A DNA stretch of 64,000 nucleotides from Macrostomum hystrix (lineage: Eukaryota > Animalia > Platyhelminthes). The position numbers and the translations under genes are program-made. Under the pieces are notes generated by a model that was not told the origin of the DNA, did not search any database, and worked only from the letters and a program-made list of their open reading frames with translations. The stretch lies in assembly GCA_950097015.1 (NCBI GenBank), contig CATNEN010000034.1, positions 3,162,001 through 3,226,000 on the forward strand, in the 5' to 3' direction. The first letter of the stretch is position 1. Every line of letters starts with the position of its first letter. Shown piece after piece: positions 5,759 to 19,214 of the stretch.

Positions 5759-6055
5759 TTAACGCTTGCCAAACCTTGGCCTACTCATAGCGTGAAGGTA
5801 CTGATTGAGGTTTTTGATGTACTGGGCGGTAGCGGCGGCCTGGTTGTCATGGTAACCCGATGCCTCATTGCGCTTGCCAAACCTGGGTCGGCTAACGGAC
5901 TGGAAGTATTGATTAAGGTAGGCCAGGTAGTCCGACACGTCATCAGCCGAGTGGAATTCCTTCGGTGAGTTGTCAGGAATTTCGGCCATAGACTTTAACT
6001 GGGCCGGGGCAATAAGCGGCATGATTAGCAAAATCCAGTTGAAAATTTGAAGCAT
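5759..6055 (-). CDS. NPF: NPY/NPF-like neuropeptide precursor A (98 aa, two NPF-type peptides, intronless)
   Basis: Hydrophobic leader; two ...Y-x6-Y-x4-SRPRF-GKR units (Tyr at -10 and -17, amidation/cleavage signal GKR); AATAAA on - strand at 5707-5712. Confidence 0.93.
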   Translation of the reverse strand: MLQIFNWILLIMPLIAPAQLKSMAEIPDNSPKEFHSADDVSDYLAYLNQYFQSVSRPRFGKRNEASGYHDNQAAATAQYIKNLNQYLHAMSRPRFGKR

Positions 6056-6228: not shown

Positions 6229-6339
6229 ACAAATATACACTTACACAGTCAAGAGTGTGTTCCCACTACTCGGTCCCTCTCACAGATGGTCGTGACGAAG
6301 TTCTAGATCGAAACCATACCTGTCTGAGCTAAATTCTTG

Positions 6340-7640
6340 ACCCCGGGTGTGGGACGGCAGAGACACCCGGGTGTGGGACGGCAGAGACACCCGGGTGTGG
6401 GACGGCAGAGACACCCGGGTGTGGGACGGCAGAGACACCCGGGTGTGGGACGGCAGAGACACCCGGGTGTGGGATGGCAGAGACACCCGGGTGTGGGAGG
6501 GCAGATAAGAAATCTCACTAGATTCTAGACACCCGGGTGTGGCATGGCAGATAAGAAATCTCACTAGATTCTAGACACCCGGGTGTGGCATGGCAGATAA
6601 GAAATCTCACTAGATTCTAGACACCTGGGTGTGGCATGGCAGATAAGAAATCTCACTAGATTCTAGACACCCGGGTGTGGCATGGCAGATAAGAAATCTC
6701 ACTAGATTCTAGACACCCGGGTGTGGCATGGCAGATAAGAAATCTCACTAGATTCTAGACACCCGGGTGTGGGATGGCAGATAAGAAATCTCACTAGATT
6801 CTAGACACCCGGGTGTGGCATGGCAGATAAGAAATCTCACTAGATTCTAGACACCTGGGTGTGGCATGGCAGATAAGAAATCTCACTAGATTCTAGACAC
6901 CTGGGTGTGGCATGGCAGATAAGAAATCTCACTAGATTCTAGACACCCGGGTGTGGGAGGGCAGATAAGAAATCTCACTAGATTCTAGACACCCGGGTGT
7001 GGCATGGAAGATAAGAAATCTCACTAGATTCTAGACACCCGGGTGTGGGATGGCAGATAATAAATCTCACTAGATTCTAGACACCCGGGTGTGGGATGGC
7101 AGGTAAGAAATCTCACTAGATTCTAGACACCCGGGTGTGGGATGGCAGGTAAGAAATCTCACTAGATTCTAGACACCCGGGTGTAGCATGGAAGATAAGA
7201 AATCTCACTAGATTCTAGACACCCGGGTGTGGCATGGCAGATAAGAAATCTCACTAGATTCTAGACACCCGGGTGTGGCATGGCAGATAAGAAATCTCAC
7301 TAGATTCTAGACACCCGGGTGTGGCATGGCAGATAAGAAATCTCACTAGATTCTAGACACCTGGGTGTGGCATGGCAGATAAGAAATCTCACTAGATTCT
7401 AGACACCCGGGTGTGGGATGGCAGATAATAAATCTCACTAGATTCTAGACACCCGGGTGAAGGATGGCAGATAAGAAATCTCACTAGATTCTAGACAGCC
7501 GGGTGTGGCATGGCAGATAAGAAATCTCACTAGATTCTAGACACCCGGGAGTGGGATGGCAGATAATAAATCTCACTAGATTCTAGACACCCGGGAGTGG
7601 GATGGCAGATAATAAATCTCACTAGATTTTAGACACCTAA
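6340..7640. repeat. Composite minisatellite: ~6 x 24-bp then ~24 x 46-bp units
   Basis: gacacccgggtgtgggacggcaga (period 24) changes to gacacccgggtgtggcatggcagataagaaatctcactagattcta (period 46). Confidence 0.95.
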
Positions 7641-8074: not shown

Positions 8075-9962
8075 TTAGCTGCAGAAGCGGCAGCAGTAAA
8101 AGCAGATTATCAACACAAACAGCAGCAGTGAAAGCAGATTATCAACACAAACAGCAGCAGTGAAAGCAGATTATCAACACAAACAGCAGCAGTAAAAGCA
8201 GATTATCAACACAAACAGCAGCAGTGAAAGCAGATTATCAACACAAACAGCAGCAGTAAAAGCAGATTATCAACACAAACAGCAGCAGTGAAAGCAGATT
8301 ATCAACACAAACAGCAGCAGTAAAAGCAGATTATCAACACAAACAGAAGCAGTAAATGCAGATTATCAACACAAACAGCAGCAGAAAAAGCAGATTATCA
8401 ACACAAACAGCAGCAGTAAAAGCAGATTATCAACACAAACAGCAGCAGTGAAAGCAGATTATCAACACAAACAGCAGCAGTAAAAGCAGATTATCAACAC
8501 AAACAGCAGCAGTGAAAGCAGATTATCAACACAAACAGCAGCAGTAAAAGCAGATTATCAACACAAACAGAAGCAGTAAATGCAGATTATCAACACAAAC
8601 AGCAGCAGAAAAAGCAGATTATCAACACAAACAGCAGCAGTAAAAGCAGATTATCAACACAAACAGCAGCAGTAAAAGCAGATTATCAACACAAACAGCA
8701 GCAGTAAAAGCAGATTATCAACACAAACAGCAGCAGTAAAAGCAGATTATCAACACAAACAGCAGCAGTAAAAGCAGATTATCAACACAAACAGCAGCAG
8801 TAAAAGCAGATTATCAACACAAACAGCAGCAGTGAAAGCAGATTATCAACACAAACAGCAGCAGTAAAAGCAGATTATCAACACAAACAGCAGCAGTAAA
8901 AGCAGATTATCAACACAAACAGCAGCAGTAAAAGCAGATTATCAACACAAACAGCAGCAGTAAAAGCAGATTATCAACACAAACAGCAGCAGTGAAAGCA
9001 GATTATCAACACAAACAGCAGCAGTGAAAGCAGATTATCAACACAAACAGCAGCAGTGAAAGCAGATTATCAACACAAACAGCAGCAGTGAAAGCAGATT
9101 ATCAACACAAACAGCAGCAGTGAAAGCAGATTATCAACACAAACAGCAGCAGTAAAAGCAGATTATCAACACAAACAGCAGCAGTGAAAGCAGATTATCA
9201 ACACAAACAGCAGCAGTAAAAGCAGATTATCAACACAAACAGCAGCAGTGAAAGCAGATTATCAACACAAACAGCAGCAGTAAAAGCAGATTATCAACAC
9301 AAACAGAAGCAGTAAATGCAGATTATCAACACAAACAGCAGCAGAAAAAGCAGATTATCAACACAAACAGCAGCAGTAAAAGCAGATTATCAACACAAAC
9401 AGCAGCAGTGAAAGCAGATTATCAACACAAACAGCAGCAGTGAAAGCAGATTATCAACACAAACAGCAGCAGTAAAAGCAGATTATCAACACAAACAGCA
9501 GCAGTGAAAGCAGATTATCAACACAAACAGCAGCAGTAAAAGCAGATTATCAACACAAACAGCAGCAGTGAAAGCAGATTATCAACACAAACAGCAGCAG
9601 TAAAAGCAGATTATCAACACAAACAGCAGCAGTAAAAGCAGATTATCAACACAAACAGCAGCAGTAAAAGCAGATTATCAACACAAACAGCAGCAGAAAA
9701 AGCAGATTATCAACACAAACAGCAGCAGTAAAAGCAGATTATCAACACAAACAGCAGCAGTAAAAGCAGATTATCAACACAAACAGCAGCAGTAAATGCA
9801 GATTATCAACACAAACAGCAGCAGTAAAAGCAGATTATCAACACAAACAGCAGCAGTAAAAGCAGATTATCAACACAAACAGCAGCAGTAAAAGCAGATT
9901 ATCAACACAAACAGCAGCAGTAAAAGCAGATTATCAACACAAACAGCAGCAGTAAAAGCAGA
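8075..9962. repeat. 32-bp minisatellite (aaacagcagcagtaaaagcagattatcaacac), ~58 copies
   Basis: Direct periodicity. Confidence 0.97.
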
Positions 9963-10592
9963 TGATTTTCGACAGTGTTTCCTGCTATTGCTTGTAAGCT
10001 ATTGCAGTTTGATGTTGTAAAAAATAGGGGATAATTAACTGGCTTCAGACATCTCAGAACCTACAAGTAGTCAGGTTGTGTTCCAGCACCCCAAAGTAGG
10101 AAGGGACAACACTAATTTCCTTTCTTGGAAATAGAAACTTGGCTCTGATTATTATATTTTCTAAAAAAACTACTGTTTCCCGGACAAGGGCAGCGTTTGG
10201 CATCGAGTTATTTTTTAAACTGAATACTGTTAATTCAAGAAGGCACATATTTTAGTCGAAATCCTTTTTTTGTGAAATTATTCCCATAGCAGCTGTAGTT
10301 ACAAAAACAGCTCACAAGCTTTGAAAAGAAATAATTCAAAACATTGAAACAAAATTAGCATAACCGCATTATCCTGTGCTTCAAAATGTGCACTCAAACT
10401 ATTATACGAGCATATATTTGTCATCGTCAGAGCGAGAGACAGACAGATTTAAATCAGCTCAAAGCTCGCTTGATTTCTTGGGTCAGAAGAGACAGGTAGG
10501 GACAGGGCTCGCCAACACGACTTTCATCATTTCAAATTAAAAATTGTCCATCTATTATTTGATTTTCGCCTCTGAATCGTCGCTTAAAACAG

Positions 10593-11003
10593 TTAGTCGA
10601 AATGGTAGAGCCGCTTGCCGAAGCGAGGTCTGCTCATTGAGTGCAGGTACTGGTTGAGATTGTTGATGTACTCGGCCGCGGCGGCCGGCGTGTCGAAGGT
10701 CTTGCGCTTGCCGAAGCGGGGCCTGCTGACCGAGTGCAGGTACTGGTTGAGGCTCGTGACGTACTTGGCTGCGTCCGCGGGAGATCTGAAGTCGTAGGCG
10801 TAGGCGCCACCACCGGCGCGCTTACCGAATCGCGGCCGGCTAACGGAATGGAAGTACTGGTTCAGGTAGGCCAGGTAGTCGGCAACATCGTCGGCGGAGG
10901 TGAAGTCCTTGGATACCTCCTCGGGAGTCCGCGGCAGTGACTTGGTGTGGCCCAGGGCGAGGGCCGACAGAAGCAGAATTAGCAGGCTGGACAGTGGCGC
11001 CAT
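10593..11003 (-). CDS. NPF: NPY/NPF-like neuropeptide precursor B (136 aa, three NPF-type peptides, intronless)
   Basis: ATG at 11003, signal peptide MAPLSSLLILLLSALALG; three Y-x6-Y-x4-SRPRF-GKR units; short C-terminal LYHFD. Confidence 0.95.
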   Translation of the reverse strand: MAPLSSLLILLLSALALGHTKSLPRTPEEVSKDFTSADDVADYLAYLNQYFHSVSRPRFGKRAGGGAYAYDFRSPADAAKYVTSLNQYLHSVSRPRFGKRKTFDTPAAAAEYINNLNQYLHSMSRPRFGKRLYHFD

Positions 11004-11094
11004 TTTTTCCGTGTTCCCGTCTTCGAATTCGATGCCAGCTCGCAAGCAAGGTCTGAGCAAGGAGGAAAGTCTGGGTTCTGCTGGGATCAGGCCG

Positions 11095-11195
11095 ATTTAT
11101 AGGGAGATCGAGGGAGGGGAAGTCGCTAGAAGTGTGTGGGCGTTAGAACTGCCTCACTACCTGTCTCCATCTGTGTTTCTCAGCTTCTGGATTGG
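11095..11195 (-). promoter_or_regulatory. Putative core promoter of NPF-B (TATA plus CCAAT)
   Basis: TATAAAT (11095-11101) ~92 nt upstream of the ATG; CCAAT (11191-11195). Confidence 0.5.
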
Positions 11196-11309
11196 CTGTG
11201 CTGCTTTCGGTAAATTTTTGTCCTCAACTTCAAGACGAGACTAAATGAAATTTGACTATTGAAATTCTTACTGTGTCATTTTCGGCTTCCTGTGTGACAC
11301 CAGGGTTTA

Positions 11310-11660
11310 TCTTAGTGTCATGTCCATCTAAGTAGTGTCATGCTCATATAATTAGTGTCATGTTCATGCCCTCTTAGTGTCATGTTCATGCCCTCTTAGT
11401 GTCATGTTCATGCCCTCTTAGTGTCATGTTCATCTTGGTGTGATGTCCATCTGAGTATCATGTCCATCGTGGTGCCATGTCCATCTTACTGTCATGTCCA
11501 TCTTACTGTCATGTCCGTCGTGGTGTCATGTCCATCTTACTGTCATGTCCGTCGTGGTGTCATGTCCATCTTAGTGTCATGTCTATCTAAGTAGTGTCTT
11601 GCTCATATAATTAGTGTCATGTTCATGCCCTCTTGGTGTCATGTTCATCTTAGTGTCAAG
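11310..11660. repeat. Imperfect ~17-23-bp repeat (tagtgtcatgtccatct-like)
   Basis: Recurring gtgtcatgt core. Confidence 0.85.
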
Positions 11661-15508: not shown

Positions 15509-16560
15509 GCAAATGACTGCTGTAAGCGTCGGACATCGCATTGGTATCTCGGAACATCCACACAAATCGCCGATTGCGGGGCCCTGGACACAGAGTGCCA
15601 CATTCTCTACGAGCGCCACCGAGAGGTGACTTTTTCAGGGCCCGGTTCGACTTCGATCACCCGGAAGAGGTGAAGCAACTTCTGAGGTCGTCATTTGGGG
15701 TATGACAGAAGAAGAAGCGGATAAAGTGATTCCGCCAGAAGAGACAAAGTTTTAGTCGTTAAGCCGGATTTTTGCAGGTGATAGGTTTTTGGATGGCATC
15801 CCCAGAAGGGAAAAAACTCTAAAAAAAGAGCTGCAATTCTGAAGGGGCCTGAAAGCACGCGCTTGGCCAGGGACACCGTCAAGAAAACGACGTGTCAGTT
15901 TGACCCGCGAGGCAATGAGCGGGCAGCGTCGTAGTAGGAGCCCCGAGGTACCGTGTCTTCGCTCCGAGTGACGAAGCTAACTAGAAGCTCCCCAAAGCCT
16001 CGGGCGCCAATCAGCAAGTTTGCTACTCGATTCGTGACGAAACTGTTTTGAAAATTCTAGCAAATAATTTTCCATATTTAGAAACTCGTTGGAGGAACTA
16101 AACAACGGTCTCGCATGAATTTGCGACAACTCAATCAACATGAATTGCATTGAACTGAGTTCCCTTTTTGACAAAAAGTTGAAGCTGACAAGTTTGAGCG
16201 CAATTTACGCTCGTAATCGCTGCTTTTAGAAGGCTTGGAAGTTCCCTAAAAATGTCTTTGAAGTGCACTCGTCAATAGCATTTTTCTGTTAATTTCCGCA
16301 AGCTTTTTTATCAGTAGGATTATGAGAAGGACCGTTTATTCAAAGATCAATGTGAAAAAACCACGGACAAGTTAAAAATTAACTACGACCTGCTTTGTCA
16401 AGGAAAAGCACGCGTTAAGAAAAAAACAAATTCACAGTAAGTAATTTGCAGCGAAATGCACTGATTCACAGGCGGACTCATTTTTAATGCAGTTTCATTG
16501 CGAAAAAGTTTTTTGGCTGTATCTGCGCCATCGGATGGCACACAAAGAACAAAGTTTCGG

Positions 16561-17396
16561 CTACTCATCGAACCTCAACGAGAAGTCGAACGGTGCGAAG
16601 GCTTTCTTGAATGCCTCTGCCGCGGCTGCCTCGTCCGCCTCCGAGTTCAGGCACTCGCGCCAGTCGACCCGTTCTGGCAGGTCGTAGACTCGACGCGAGG
16701 CCAGCACGTCGCGACCGAAGCTCAGCGGAAAGGTGTCGAATTGTTCGCGCGGAATGGGGCAGAACAGCCGCTCGCCTGTTGGCAGGTCGGCGCAGAAATA
16801 GGCGGCCCCTGGAGGCACGAGGTCGGCCAGATCCACACCAGGATGCAGCTCGCGCAGCTGCAGCCTAGGCTCGTGCTTGTCGGCCACGTCAATGAATGCA
16901 GCCTTCAGGCCTGGCAGGGTGTTCACAGGCACTGGGATACAGTGCAGCTGGGCGTGATAGCATTTGAAGTTGCGCTCGATGTACACAGGGGCCAGGCCGG
17001 ACTCGGCGTACAGCTGCGCCAGGCAGCGCTTGTAGCGAGCGAACTCGGACAGAACCTCGGCCGGACAGTCGGACAGGCATTTGTGATGCCCGATGGGCAG
17101 GGCAATCACGTGCTGGGGCACTAGGGGACCGCGAGCCAACGCCAAGTATGTCGCCTTGGCAACCGACACCACAAGGTGGCGTTGAACGTCCGGATTGCCG
17201 AGGCAGAACCAGCAAGCCGACTGCGGCCGCCGCTTCGCCTCGCCGCCGGCGCCTCCGTCGTCGCCTCTTTCGTTTCGGCCAGGTCCGCCGCTGCCGCCTC
17301 CTCTGCCGCGTCCACCGCGGTCGGGCCAGGAGCGCTTCTGACCCTGACGCGGCTTGCCAGTTGACTCGGCGAAGAAGAAGCTACGGGGACCGGTGT
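16561..17396 (-). CDS. CWF19L1: CWF19-like protein 1, exon 3 (CwfJ C-terminal domains)
   Basis: CWFCLGNPDVQRHLVVSV...RGPLVPQHVIALPIGH...ERNFKCYHAQLHCIPVP...AFKKAFAPFDFSL; acceptor tctgttctctccccag|17396 (phase 1). Confidence 0.93.
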
Positions 17397-17459
17397 CTGG
17401 GGAGAGAACAGATAGCTGCTTTAGCTTCTTCTGCAAGCAATACATTCAACTCAGCTAAC

Positions 17460-18420
17460 ACTTCAGTTCCTCAGCTGACTCTTCAGTTTCTCAGCTGACT
17501 CTTCAGTTTCTCAGCTGACCCATCCTGTTCCTATTGACCCTCAGCTGACCCCTCAGCTTCTCAGCTGACCCCTCAGCTTCTCAGCTGACCCCTCAGCTTC
17601 TCAGCTGACCCCTCAGCTTCTCAGCTGACCCCTCAGCTTCTCAGCTGACCCCTCAGCTTCTCAGCTGACCCCTCAGCTTCTCAGCTGACCCCTCAGCTTC
17701 TCAGCTGACCCCTCAGCTTCTCAGCTGACCCCTCAGCTTCTCAGCTGACCCCTCAGCTTCTCAGCTGACCCCTCAGCTTCTCAGCTGACCCCTCAGCTTC
17801 TCAGCTGACCCCTCAGCTTCTCAGCTGACCCCTCAGCTTCTCAGCTGACCCCTCAGCTTCTCAGCTGACCCCTCAGCTTCTCAGCTGACCCCTCAGCTTC
17901 TCAGCTGACCCCTCAGCTTCTCAGCTGACCCCTCAGCTTCTCAGCTGACCCCTCAGCTTCTCAGCTGACCCCTCAGCTTCTCAGCTGACCCCTCAGCTTC
18001 TCAGCTGACCCCTCAGCTTCTCAGCTGACCCCTCAGCTTCTCAGCTGACCCCTCAGCTTCTCAGCTGACCCCTCAGCTTCTCAGCTGACCCCTCAGCTTC
18101 TCAGCTGACCCCTCAGCTTCTCAGCTGACCCCTCAGCTTCTCAGCTGACCCCTCAGCTTCTCAGCTGACCCCTCAGCTTCTCAGCTGACCCCTCAGCTTC
18201 TCAGCTGACCCCTCAGCTTCTCAGCTGACCCCTCAGCTTCTCAGCTGACCCCTCAGCTTCTCAGCTGACCCCTCAGCTTCTCAGCTGACCCCTCAGCTTC
18301 TCAGCTGACCCCTCAGCTTCTCAGCTGACCCCTCAGCTTCTCAGCTGACCCCTCAGCTTCTCAGCTGACCCCTCAGCTTCTCAGCTGACCCCTCAGCTTC
18401 TCAGCTGACCCCTAAGCTCC
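17460..18420. repeat. 20-bp minisatellite (cctcagcttctcagctgacc), ~43 identical core copies, CWF19L1 intron 2
   Basis: Lines 17581-18360 are identical 60-mers. Confidence 0.98.
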
Positions 18421-18682
18421 CTCAGTTCCTTATATGACAACCCAGTTTCTCAGCTAATGCATCAGTCCATTAAATGACGGCTTTAGCCTCATGATTTACT
18501 GTTAGTAGAAACAAAGTGAGAAGCGAATATTTTATAAAAAACTTGAATCGAAGCAGAGCCACATTTCTTCAAGCTAATCCTGAATTCCTGAGACCAAATA
18601 GAAAAATCACTAAATTGACAGCCTAGTTCTAAACACACCGGTGGTTCTCGCTTGAACGATAACCGCCCAATGGGGCACTCAC

Positions 18683-19198
18683 CGGCAGCGCACAGGTCCG
18701 CAATGTCTGTCGGATAGGGACAGTCGGTGACGCCGGAGCCGCTGGGCGTCTGTCGCAGCAGTTCGCCGCGATCCATCTTAATCAGTGGGGTCAGCTGCAG
18801 CGCGTACAGGCAGCGCCGGCCGCTGGCAATGCCAGCCAGCGAGTGGAATCTAGTTGAGTGCCGCTCCCGCTCGGATCCGACCCGATGATTGCGATAGGGC
18901 CGACGCTCAAAGTCGAGGCCGCCGTCGGCTCCGAAGCCGCAGGCGCTGACGTGATAGCGCGGCCGCAGTTTAACGGCCAGCTTAGCCACAGCGGGCTGAG
19001 CGAACCGTTTGGCTGCGGCTTCAACGGCCTGGCACTCGTCAAGCGGCAGCCAGTCTTCGCAGCCGTTGACCACACCAGGTGGCCAGGCGCAGGTGAGCAG
19101 CAGATCAACGCCGGGGAATTCGTCCGCATCTGCTTGGCTAGCTAGCCAGGCCAGGTCTGTGTCGCTGAACTGACCGTTGCCCTCTCCGCGACTCGTGC
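18683..19198 (-). CDS. CWF19L1: CWF19-like protein 1, exon 2 (metallophosphatase-like region)
   Basis: FPGVDLLLTCAWP...KLRPRYH...FERRPYRNH...HSTRFHSLA; acceptor gctgtcag|19198, donor 18683|gtgagt, both phase 1. Confidence 0.92.
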
Positions 19199-19214
19199 CT
19201 GACAGCGGGGAGCC

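Follow-up and report, generated by a model that had tools for sequence, protein, structure and literature searches.

On the reverse strand of a 64,000-nt stretch of Macrostomum hystrix DNA (the window), we identified a gene in which three neuropeptide F (NPF)-type units are joined in one prohormone. The locus is very probably a functional, transcribed neuropeptide gene with a single coding exon. Its product carries a signal peptide and three NPF units and would be cleaved and amidated to three long peptides, an architecture that would have been reached by intron loss followed by duplication.

Three NPF-type units in one open reading frame

Translation of the open reading frame (ORF) bore out the original prediction of a signal peptide and three SRPRF-GKR units in one reading frame. 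A hydrophobic N-terminus is followed by three units, each ending in SRPRF and then GKR, and by a 5-residue tail (Table 1). There are no spacers between the units, the next one starting straight after GKR, and no internal dibasic site was found in any of the three. Searched in six frames, the 64-kb window contained five RPRFG[KR] motifs, three of them in this ORF (11003..10593) and two in a paralogous gene (6055..5759).

The original prediction had named a search with the Pfam profile PF00159 (NPY/pancreatic hormone, Hormone_3) as a check beforehand. The whole precursor matched this profile in three stretches with 100 bits (E 7e-29). Because each unit alone (Table 1) also scored above the gathering cut-off of 28.7 bits, the match is not due to chance. 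The profile covered 27-28 residues per unit, both Tyr positions included; the matches began at profile position 8-9, and the N-terminal polyproline part of the PP-fold was unrecognised in any unit. By the usual NPF convention, in which the C-terminal Phe is position 1, all three units have Tyr at positions 10 and 17. The claim that Tyr lies exactly at -10 and -17 holds on this count, but not for the literal offsets, at which Gln and Asp/Lys/Glu are found. Judged by profile and C-terminal signature, the predicted precursor is a poly-NPF prohormone belonging to the NPY/NPF family.

The units differ at their N-termini. If unit 1 starts at Leu23 (LPRTP, 37 aa), as had been proposed, its second and fifth residues are Pro, an NPY-like pattern. 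The N-terminus is not fixed by sequence, and the -3/-1 rule, applied by eye, favours cleavage after ALG (residue 18), which would give a 41-residue peptide 1 starting HTKS. Orthologues read ALG↓Q or APA↓Q at the signal-cleavage site. Units 2 (35 aa) and 3 (27-28 aa) have no polyproline N-terminus and are shorter than classical NPFs of 36-40 aa. A single-sequence AF2 model of low confidence (mean pLDDT 53) gave each unit a single helix (residues 37-54, 75-92 and 106-122), each stopping just before SRPRF, as in NPY-family peptides.

Table 1. Positions of the three-unit NPF gene, its parts and its tandem partner within the window.
Feature	Positions	Strand	Details and basis
Three-unit NPF prohormone coding sequence, complete and uninterrupted	10593..11003	-	136 aa + stop; ORF list, translation, PF00159, dN/dS
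Signal peptide, residues 1-18 (predicted)	10950..11003	-	Hydrophobic core and -3/-1 rule, by eye; ALG favoured
Signal peptide, alternative end after residue 22	end at 10938	-	
Unit 1, long NPF-type peptide, SRPRF end	10827..10937	-	37 aa as drawn; 41 aa if signal ends at residue 18; PF00159 36.1 bits alone
GKR site 1, amidation donor Gly and dibasic cleavage	10818..10826	-	Sequence; kept in all Macrostomum paralogues
Unit 2, 35-aa NPF-type, SRPRF end, 'middle' unit type	10713..10817	-	PF00159 36.1 bits alone
GKR cleavage/amidation site 2, then one more Lys	10704..10712	-	Sequence
Unit 3, 27-28-aa NPF-type, SRPRF end, 'last' unit type	10620..10703	-	PF00159 32.6 bits alone
GKR site 3 and 5-residue C-terminal tail, no CPON-like peptide	10596..10619	-	Sequence
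Transcript, minimum extent	10364..11032	-	Logan contigs; 5' UTR at least 29 nt, 3' UTR at least 229 nt
TATAAA box	11096..11101	-	Within 11-base block CCCTATAAATC; 98 nt upstream of ATG; upstream-region alignment
Paralogous two-unit NPF prohormone gene	5759..6055	-	98 aa; PF00159 twice, 63 bits; tandem partner, same strand

The gene is transcribed

Two runs (39 and 47 million letters) each yielded one Logan contig on positions 9900-11600, extending over 10407-11007 and 10364-11032 with a word depth of about 227 and 199, respectively, with no joints and with empty flanks. Since a depth of about 200 in such small runs exceeds the genomic coverage of an animal genome, these contigs are transcripts; the RNA status of these two best runs rests on depth and contig limits. 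Two more runs, flagged as probable RNA, contained parts of the ORF at low depth. The three-unit NPF gene is transcribed. The original prediction had named the lack of a transcript as evidence that would count against it, and what we found were high-depth contigs spanning the ORF. Its description of the gene as intronless held for the coding sequence, with which the contigs are colinear across 10364-11032. Ahead of this colinear coding sequence, the transcript may still carry a further 5' UTR exon or a spliced leader.

At window positions 11003-11008, the longer contig has an extra T in a T-run, which read on the coding strand is the A-run preceding the ATG. The variant is a length polymorphism of the 5' UTR and leaves the start codon untouched. 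Further upstream, alignment of the two species showed the block around the TATAAA box, CCCTATAAATC, to be identical in the window and in M. lignano.

A syntenic orthologue under purifying selection

The best database match was Mlig009822 of M. lignano (PAA66726.1, 137 aa), with 83-85% protein identity; the exact window protein had no record in the assembly index. Mlig009822 shares with the window gene three units in identical order, an uninterrupted ORF, its syntenic position and the TATA block. The two genes differ by a dS of 0.79, by an indel of 4 residues at the start of unit 2, by their unlike C-terminal tails and in the residue right after the predicted signal cleavage, which is Gln in Mlig009822 and His in the window gene. 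Gene order matches that of the M. lignano contig: a CwfJ-domain gene comes first, then the NPF gene with three units, another NPF gene with two or three, and a conserved block downstream, and nucleotide identity in the syntenic blocks is 71-82%. The window accordingly derives from a Macrostomum-type flatworm other than the sequenced M. lignano line. On its upstream side the NPF pair has kept the CwfJ-domain gene (PF04677/PF04676) as its neighbour, represented on the minus strand of the window by blocks at about 16537-19201 that share 77-82% identity with the M. lignano gene.

Codon comparison with the orthologue gave a dN of 0.091 and a dN/dS of 0.11. All segments of the precursor are constrained (pN 0.00-0.18 vs pS 0.38-0.61), and in each of units 2 and 3 the last 18 codons differ by 5 synonymous and 0 nonsynonymous changes. 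Over the last 24 residues, unit 3 is 100% identical to unit 3 of M. lignano, and unit 2 is 96% identical to its counterpart. The three-unit NPF gene is under purifying selection.

The pattern of constraint also bears on which peptides the precursor would release. If it were processed in the manner of FMRFamide or short NPF (sNPF) precursors, its units would be cut at single basic residues, the active products would be short RPRFamides, and the N-terminal parts of the units would be mere spacers. Several copies per precursor are the typical arrangement for sNPF/FLP (PMC7314547), conservation is highest in the C-terminal halves of the units, and the indel between the species lies at the start of unit 2. 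The units also contain single Arg or Lys residues, and monobasic cleavage at them may be compatible with the sequence. The N-terminal halves are nevertheless still constrained (pN 0.09-0.17 vs pS 0.38-0.61), and every unit fits the NPY profile over 27-28 residues that include both Tyr positions. Because the units contain no dibasic site and their internal single basic residues differ across the paralogues, long products are favoured, and we regard processing to short RPRFamides as unlikely.

The likeness to known sNPF/FMRFamide-like precursors lies in the release of several RFamides from one precursor at dibasic sites, but the peptides of that class have a length of only about 6-20 aa and show no match to the NPY helix profile, whereas the window units are 27-41 aa and all match it. 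The combination of short RFamides, basic sites and acidic spacers by which that class is recognised is not found in the window precursor. Nematode flp-34 is placed among these short NPF/FMRFamide-like multi-copy precursors. The reading originally put forward, a prohormone with three NPY/NPF units, gained support from expression and conservation, and long amidated products are expected from it.

It is also conceivable that the locus is a functionless retrocopy or a decaying duplicate, with an ORF left open by chance or by recent origin, and both the intron-free coding sequence, unlike that of canonical NPF genes, and the G+C content of the ORF (62%, against 38-41% in 2 kb of flanking sequence on each side) would suit such a history. 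This is scarcely credible for a gene that has kept a low dN/dS over the divergence of the two species, that is conserved in synteny and TATA block, that is abundantly represented among transcript contigs and whose three units have stayed intact in both species.

Departure from the canonical NPF architecture

According to the literature, NPF is a single-copy peptide (PMC3749230), and an NPY/NPF precursor consists of the peptide followed by a C-flanking peptide, CPON (PMC2953531). A hallmark of the family is a phase-2 intron that splits the Arg codon preceding the terminal Phe/Tyr between its bases 2 and 3; it occurs from vertebrates to flatworms, and among the 11 planarian npy genes 10 have it (PMC7314547; PMC2953531). 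Set against canonical NPFs (Moniezia expansa NPF, Schmidtea mediterranea npy-1 to npy-11, mollusc and arthropod NPF), the window gene shares the PF00159 match, the RPRF-Gly-dibasic ending and Tyr 10/17. Like them it also has a predicted helix before the C-terminal tail, in the low-confidence AF2 model, and a first unit of 37-41 aa directly behind the signal peptide. It differs in that it encodes three peptides instead of one, ends in a tail of 5 residues with no C-flanking peptide, and lacks the phase-2 intron in the Arg codon before Phe, as do the M. lignano genes. The absence of a polyproline N-terminus from units 2 and 3 is a further difference. A short family member has been described in planarian NPY-8A, of only 29 aa (PMC2953531). 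Read from its sequence, the window gene fails both architectural criteria for NPF while passing those at the peptide level, namely the profile, RxRF-Gly-basic and Tyr 10/17. The departure from the rule of one peptide plus a C-terminal extension, noted in the original prediction, was confirmed against the published rule.

Paralogues and evolution of the units

The tandem partner in the window encodes two units and lies 4.5 kb downstream of the three-unit gene, syntenic with Mlig007142/Mlig003006. Its stop codon comes straight after the second GKR, and a C-terminal tail is absent. Just upstream of it, at 6280-6564, the window contains a tandem repeat with a period of 24 nt that is open in several frames (PSHTRVSL-type translation).

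M. lignano has three families of multi-unit NPF genes. Mlig009822 encodes three units and is present in three gene copies, Mlig007142/Mlig003006 encode two or three units, and Mlig025228 encodes two units and ends in RPRFG; its genomic ORF of 318 nt (105 aa and stop) has no interruption. The two-unit model of Mlig007142 (108 aa) cuts out a 99-nt 'intron' that corresponds to exactly one unit (NIVC01000624.1, 18072-18497). At this site the genome reads through and gives, as in Mlig003006, a 141-aa product of three units; two of these are near-identical. By eye, the repeat junction has AG↓GT...AG boundaries. Gene copies that differ in unit number, a mapping artefact or genuine splicing that skips a unit could each account for the 99-nt stretch; unit number at Mlig007142 is either still variable or mis-modelled. 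By sequence, Macrostomum has at least three intronless multi-unit NPF genes, one of them being the neighbour of the three-unit gene. A word-index homologue search with the signal peptide and unit 1 returned no candidates, a blank that does not speak for absence, and Macrostomum may keep a single-copy NPF gene of canonical form as well.

This discrepancy in M. lignano lends some colour to the idea that unit number is an artefact of repeat expansion or collapse in assembly and that the true gene has one or two units, but for the window gene the idea is too improbable to retain, as its three units are only 54-71% identical (last 24 residues) and too different for an assembler to collapse or expand, independent transcript contigs from two runs span the ORF without indels, and the M. 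lignano orthologue likewise has three units in three gene copies. The pseudogene and assembly-artefact readings were both rejected on the evidence of transcription, synteny, selection, the conserved TATA block and unit divergence.

Compared over their last 24 residues, the units fall into types that follow their position in the precursor. First units of both paralogues and both species form one group (75-92% identity), last units of both paralogues and both species form another (71-100%), and the middle unit of the three-unit gene is a type of its own. These position-specific types imply that the units predate both the gene duplication and the split of the species, and that each has been kept in its own right.

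Multi-unit precursors outside Macrostomum

The layout was also found in other animals. In Meganyctiphanes norvegica (Northern krill), in which we observed several three-unit NPF precursors, CAL4093327.1 (143 aa) has a signal peptide and three PF00159 units with GRPRF-GKR ends (105 bits). Its units measure about 30 residues each, and from a gene model extending over 48 kb it follows that the krill gene has introns. Krill units are alike among themselves (67-79%) and not like flatworm units (21-42%), and for this reason we take the multiplication in krill to be independent. In ice krill, an NPF2 was described as partial, with a dibasic site upstream, and a single copy was concluded (PMC3749230); this 'partial NPF2' may be a fragment of a multi-unit precursor. 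Marine metatranscriptomes contain proteins with 3-6 RPRF-GKR units, some with a canonical NPF-like first unit, although these units score below the Pfam PF00159 cut-off. Finally, positions 2001-2609 of a 334-kb contig of ENA ERZ25767047 hold an uninterrupted ORF with an internal signal peptide and two long NPF units ending in RPRF-GR, which we interpret as another intronless multi-unit NPF gene outside Macrostomum.

The window gene had originally been called an unusual polyprotein NPF system. The layout is indeed rare, but it is not singular, given the M. lignano genes, the krill precursors and the marine metatranscriptomes. The M. lignano orthologue and two more multi-unit NPF genes are already public, as 'hypothetical protein' at NCBI and under the automatic name 'Neuropeptide F/Y' in UniRef, where Mlig009822 is called 'Neuropeptide F'. 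Full-text search with five peptide strings from these units returned no paper, and we found no description of multi-copy NPF in flatworms in the searchable literature; an earlier listing of Macrostomum NPF in print is possible. The multi-unit NPF architecture is therefore rare and apparently undiscussed, yet not unique.

Proposed processing and origin

The following steps of processing are taken from established prohormone biochemistry. After removal of the signal peptide, a PC2-type prohormone convertase would cut after each Lys-Arg, a carboxypeptidase would trim the basic residues, and a peptidylglycine alpha-amidating enzyme would use the Gly to amidate the Phe. A neural PC2 homologue is known in M. 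lignano, where it is essential for post-embryonic development (PMC4490696). The expected products are three RPRFamides of about 37-41, 35 and 27-28 residues, which would share the C-terminus Y-(F/L)-H-S-(V/M)-S-R-P-R-F-amide and the amphipathic helix preceding it and would differ in their N-termini. NPY/NPF-type G-protein-coupled receptors would be their expected targets, and the near-identity of the C-terminal decapeptide suggests a common receptor type or types. It is a matter of speculation that the distinct, separately conserved N-terminal parts confer differing potency, receptor preference or stability.

As to the origin of the gene, an NPF gene would first have lost the conserved intron, which would have placed the whole peptide-plus-GKR module in one exon. 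Duplication of units by unequal exchange would have come next, and tandem duplication of the gene later.

A wider reading extends this scenario to the whole Macrostomum NPF family of at least three genes, which would have switched to an intronless, CPON-less, multi-unit layout. On this reading, the intron would have been lost once in an ancestor, through retroposition or cDNA-mediated conversion, and this loss would have enabled the duplication of whole units; the 'first', 'middle' and 'last' units would be conserved as distinct ligands that differ in receptor preference or stability; unit number would still be changing, as between 2 and 3 among M. lignano gene copies; and a parallel, independent multiplication would have taken place in krill and other marine arthropod-like animals. 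Taken as a whole this is a tentative proposal, and we lean somewhat against its holding in every part.

Implications for NPF orthology and function

NPY/NPF is among the best-conserved neuropeptide systems of bilaterians. The layout of one peptide plus CPON and the intron in the Arg codon both serve as criteria of orthology (PMC7314547, PMC2953531). In one flatworm lineage every detectable NPF gene is multi-copy and intronless, which means that these criteria can fail. If the wider reading is true, the NPF family can become a cocktail precursor, and single copy and Arg-codon intron are weaker as orthology criteria.

The predicted products would also form a natural set of three to five ligands with a common receptor-binding end and differing N-termini. 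Macrostomum lignano is transgenic-ready and amenable to RNAi, and the purpose of the cocktail, whether dose, different receptors or different stability, is directly testable in this species. Planarian NPY-8 controls sexual maturation, which makes a reproductive role a concrete hypothesis for the Macrostomum peptides.
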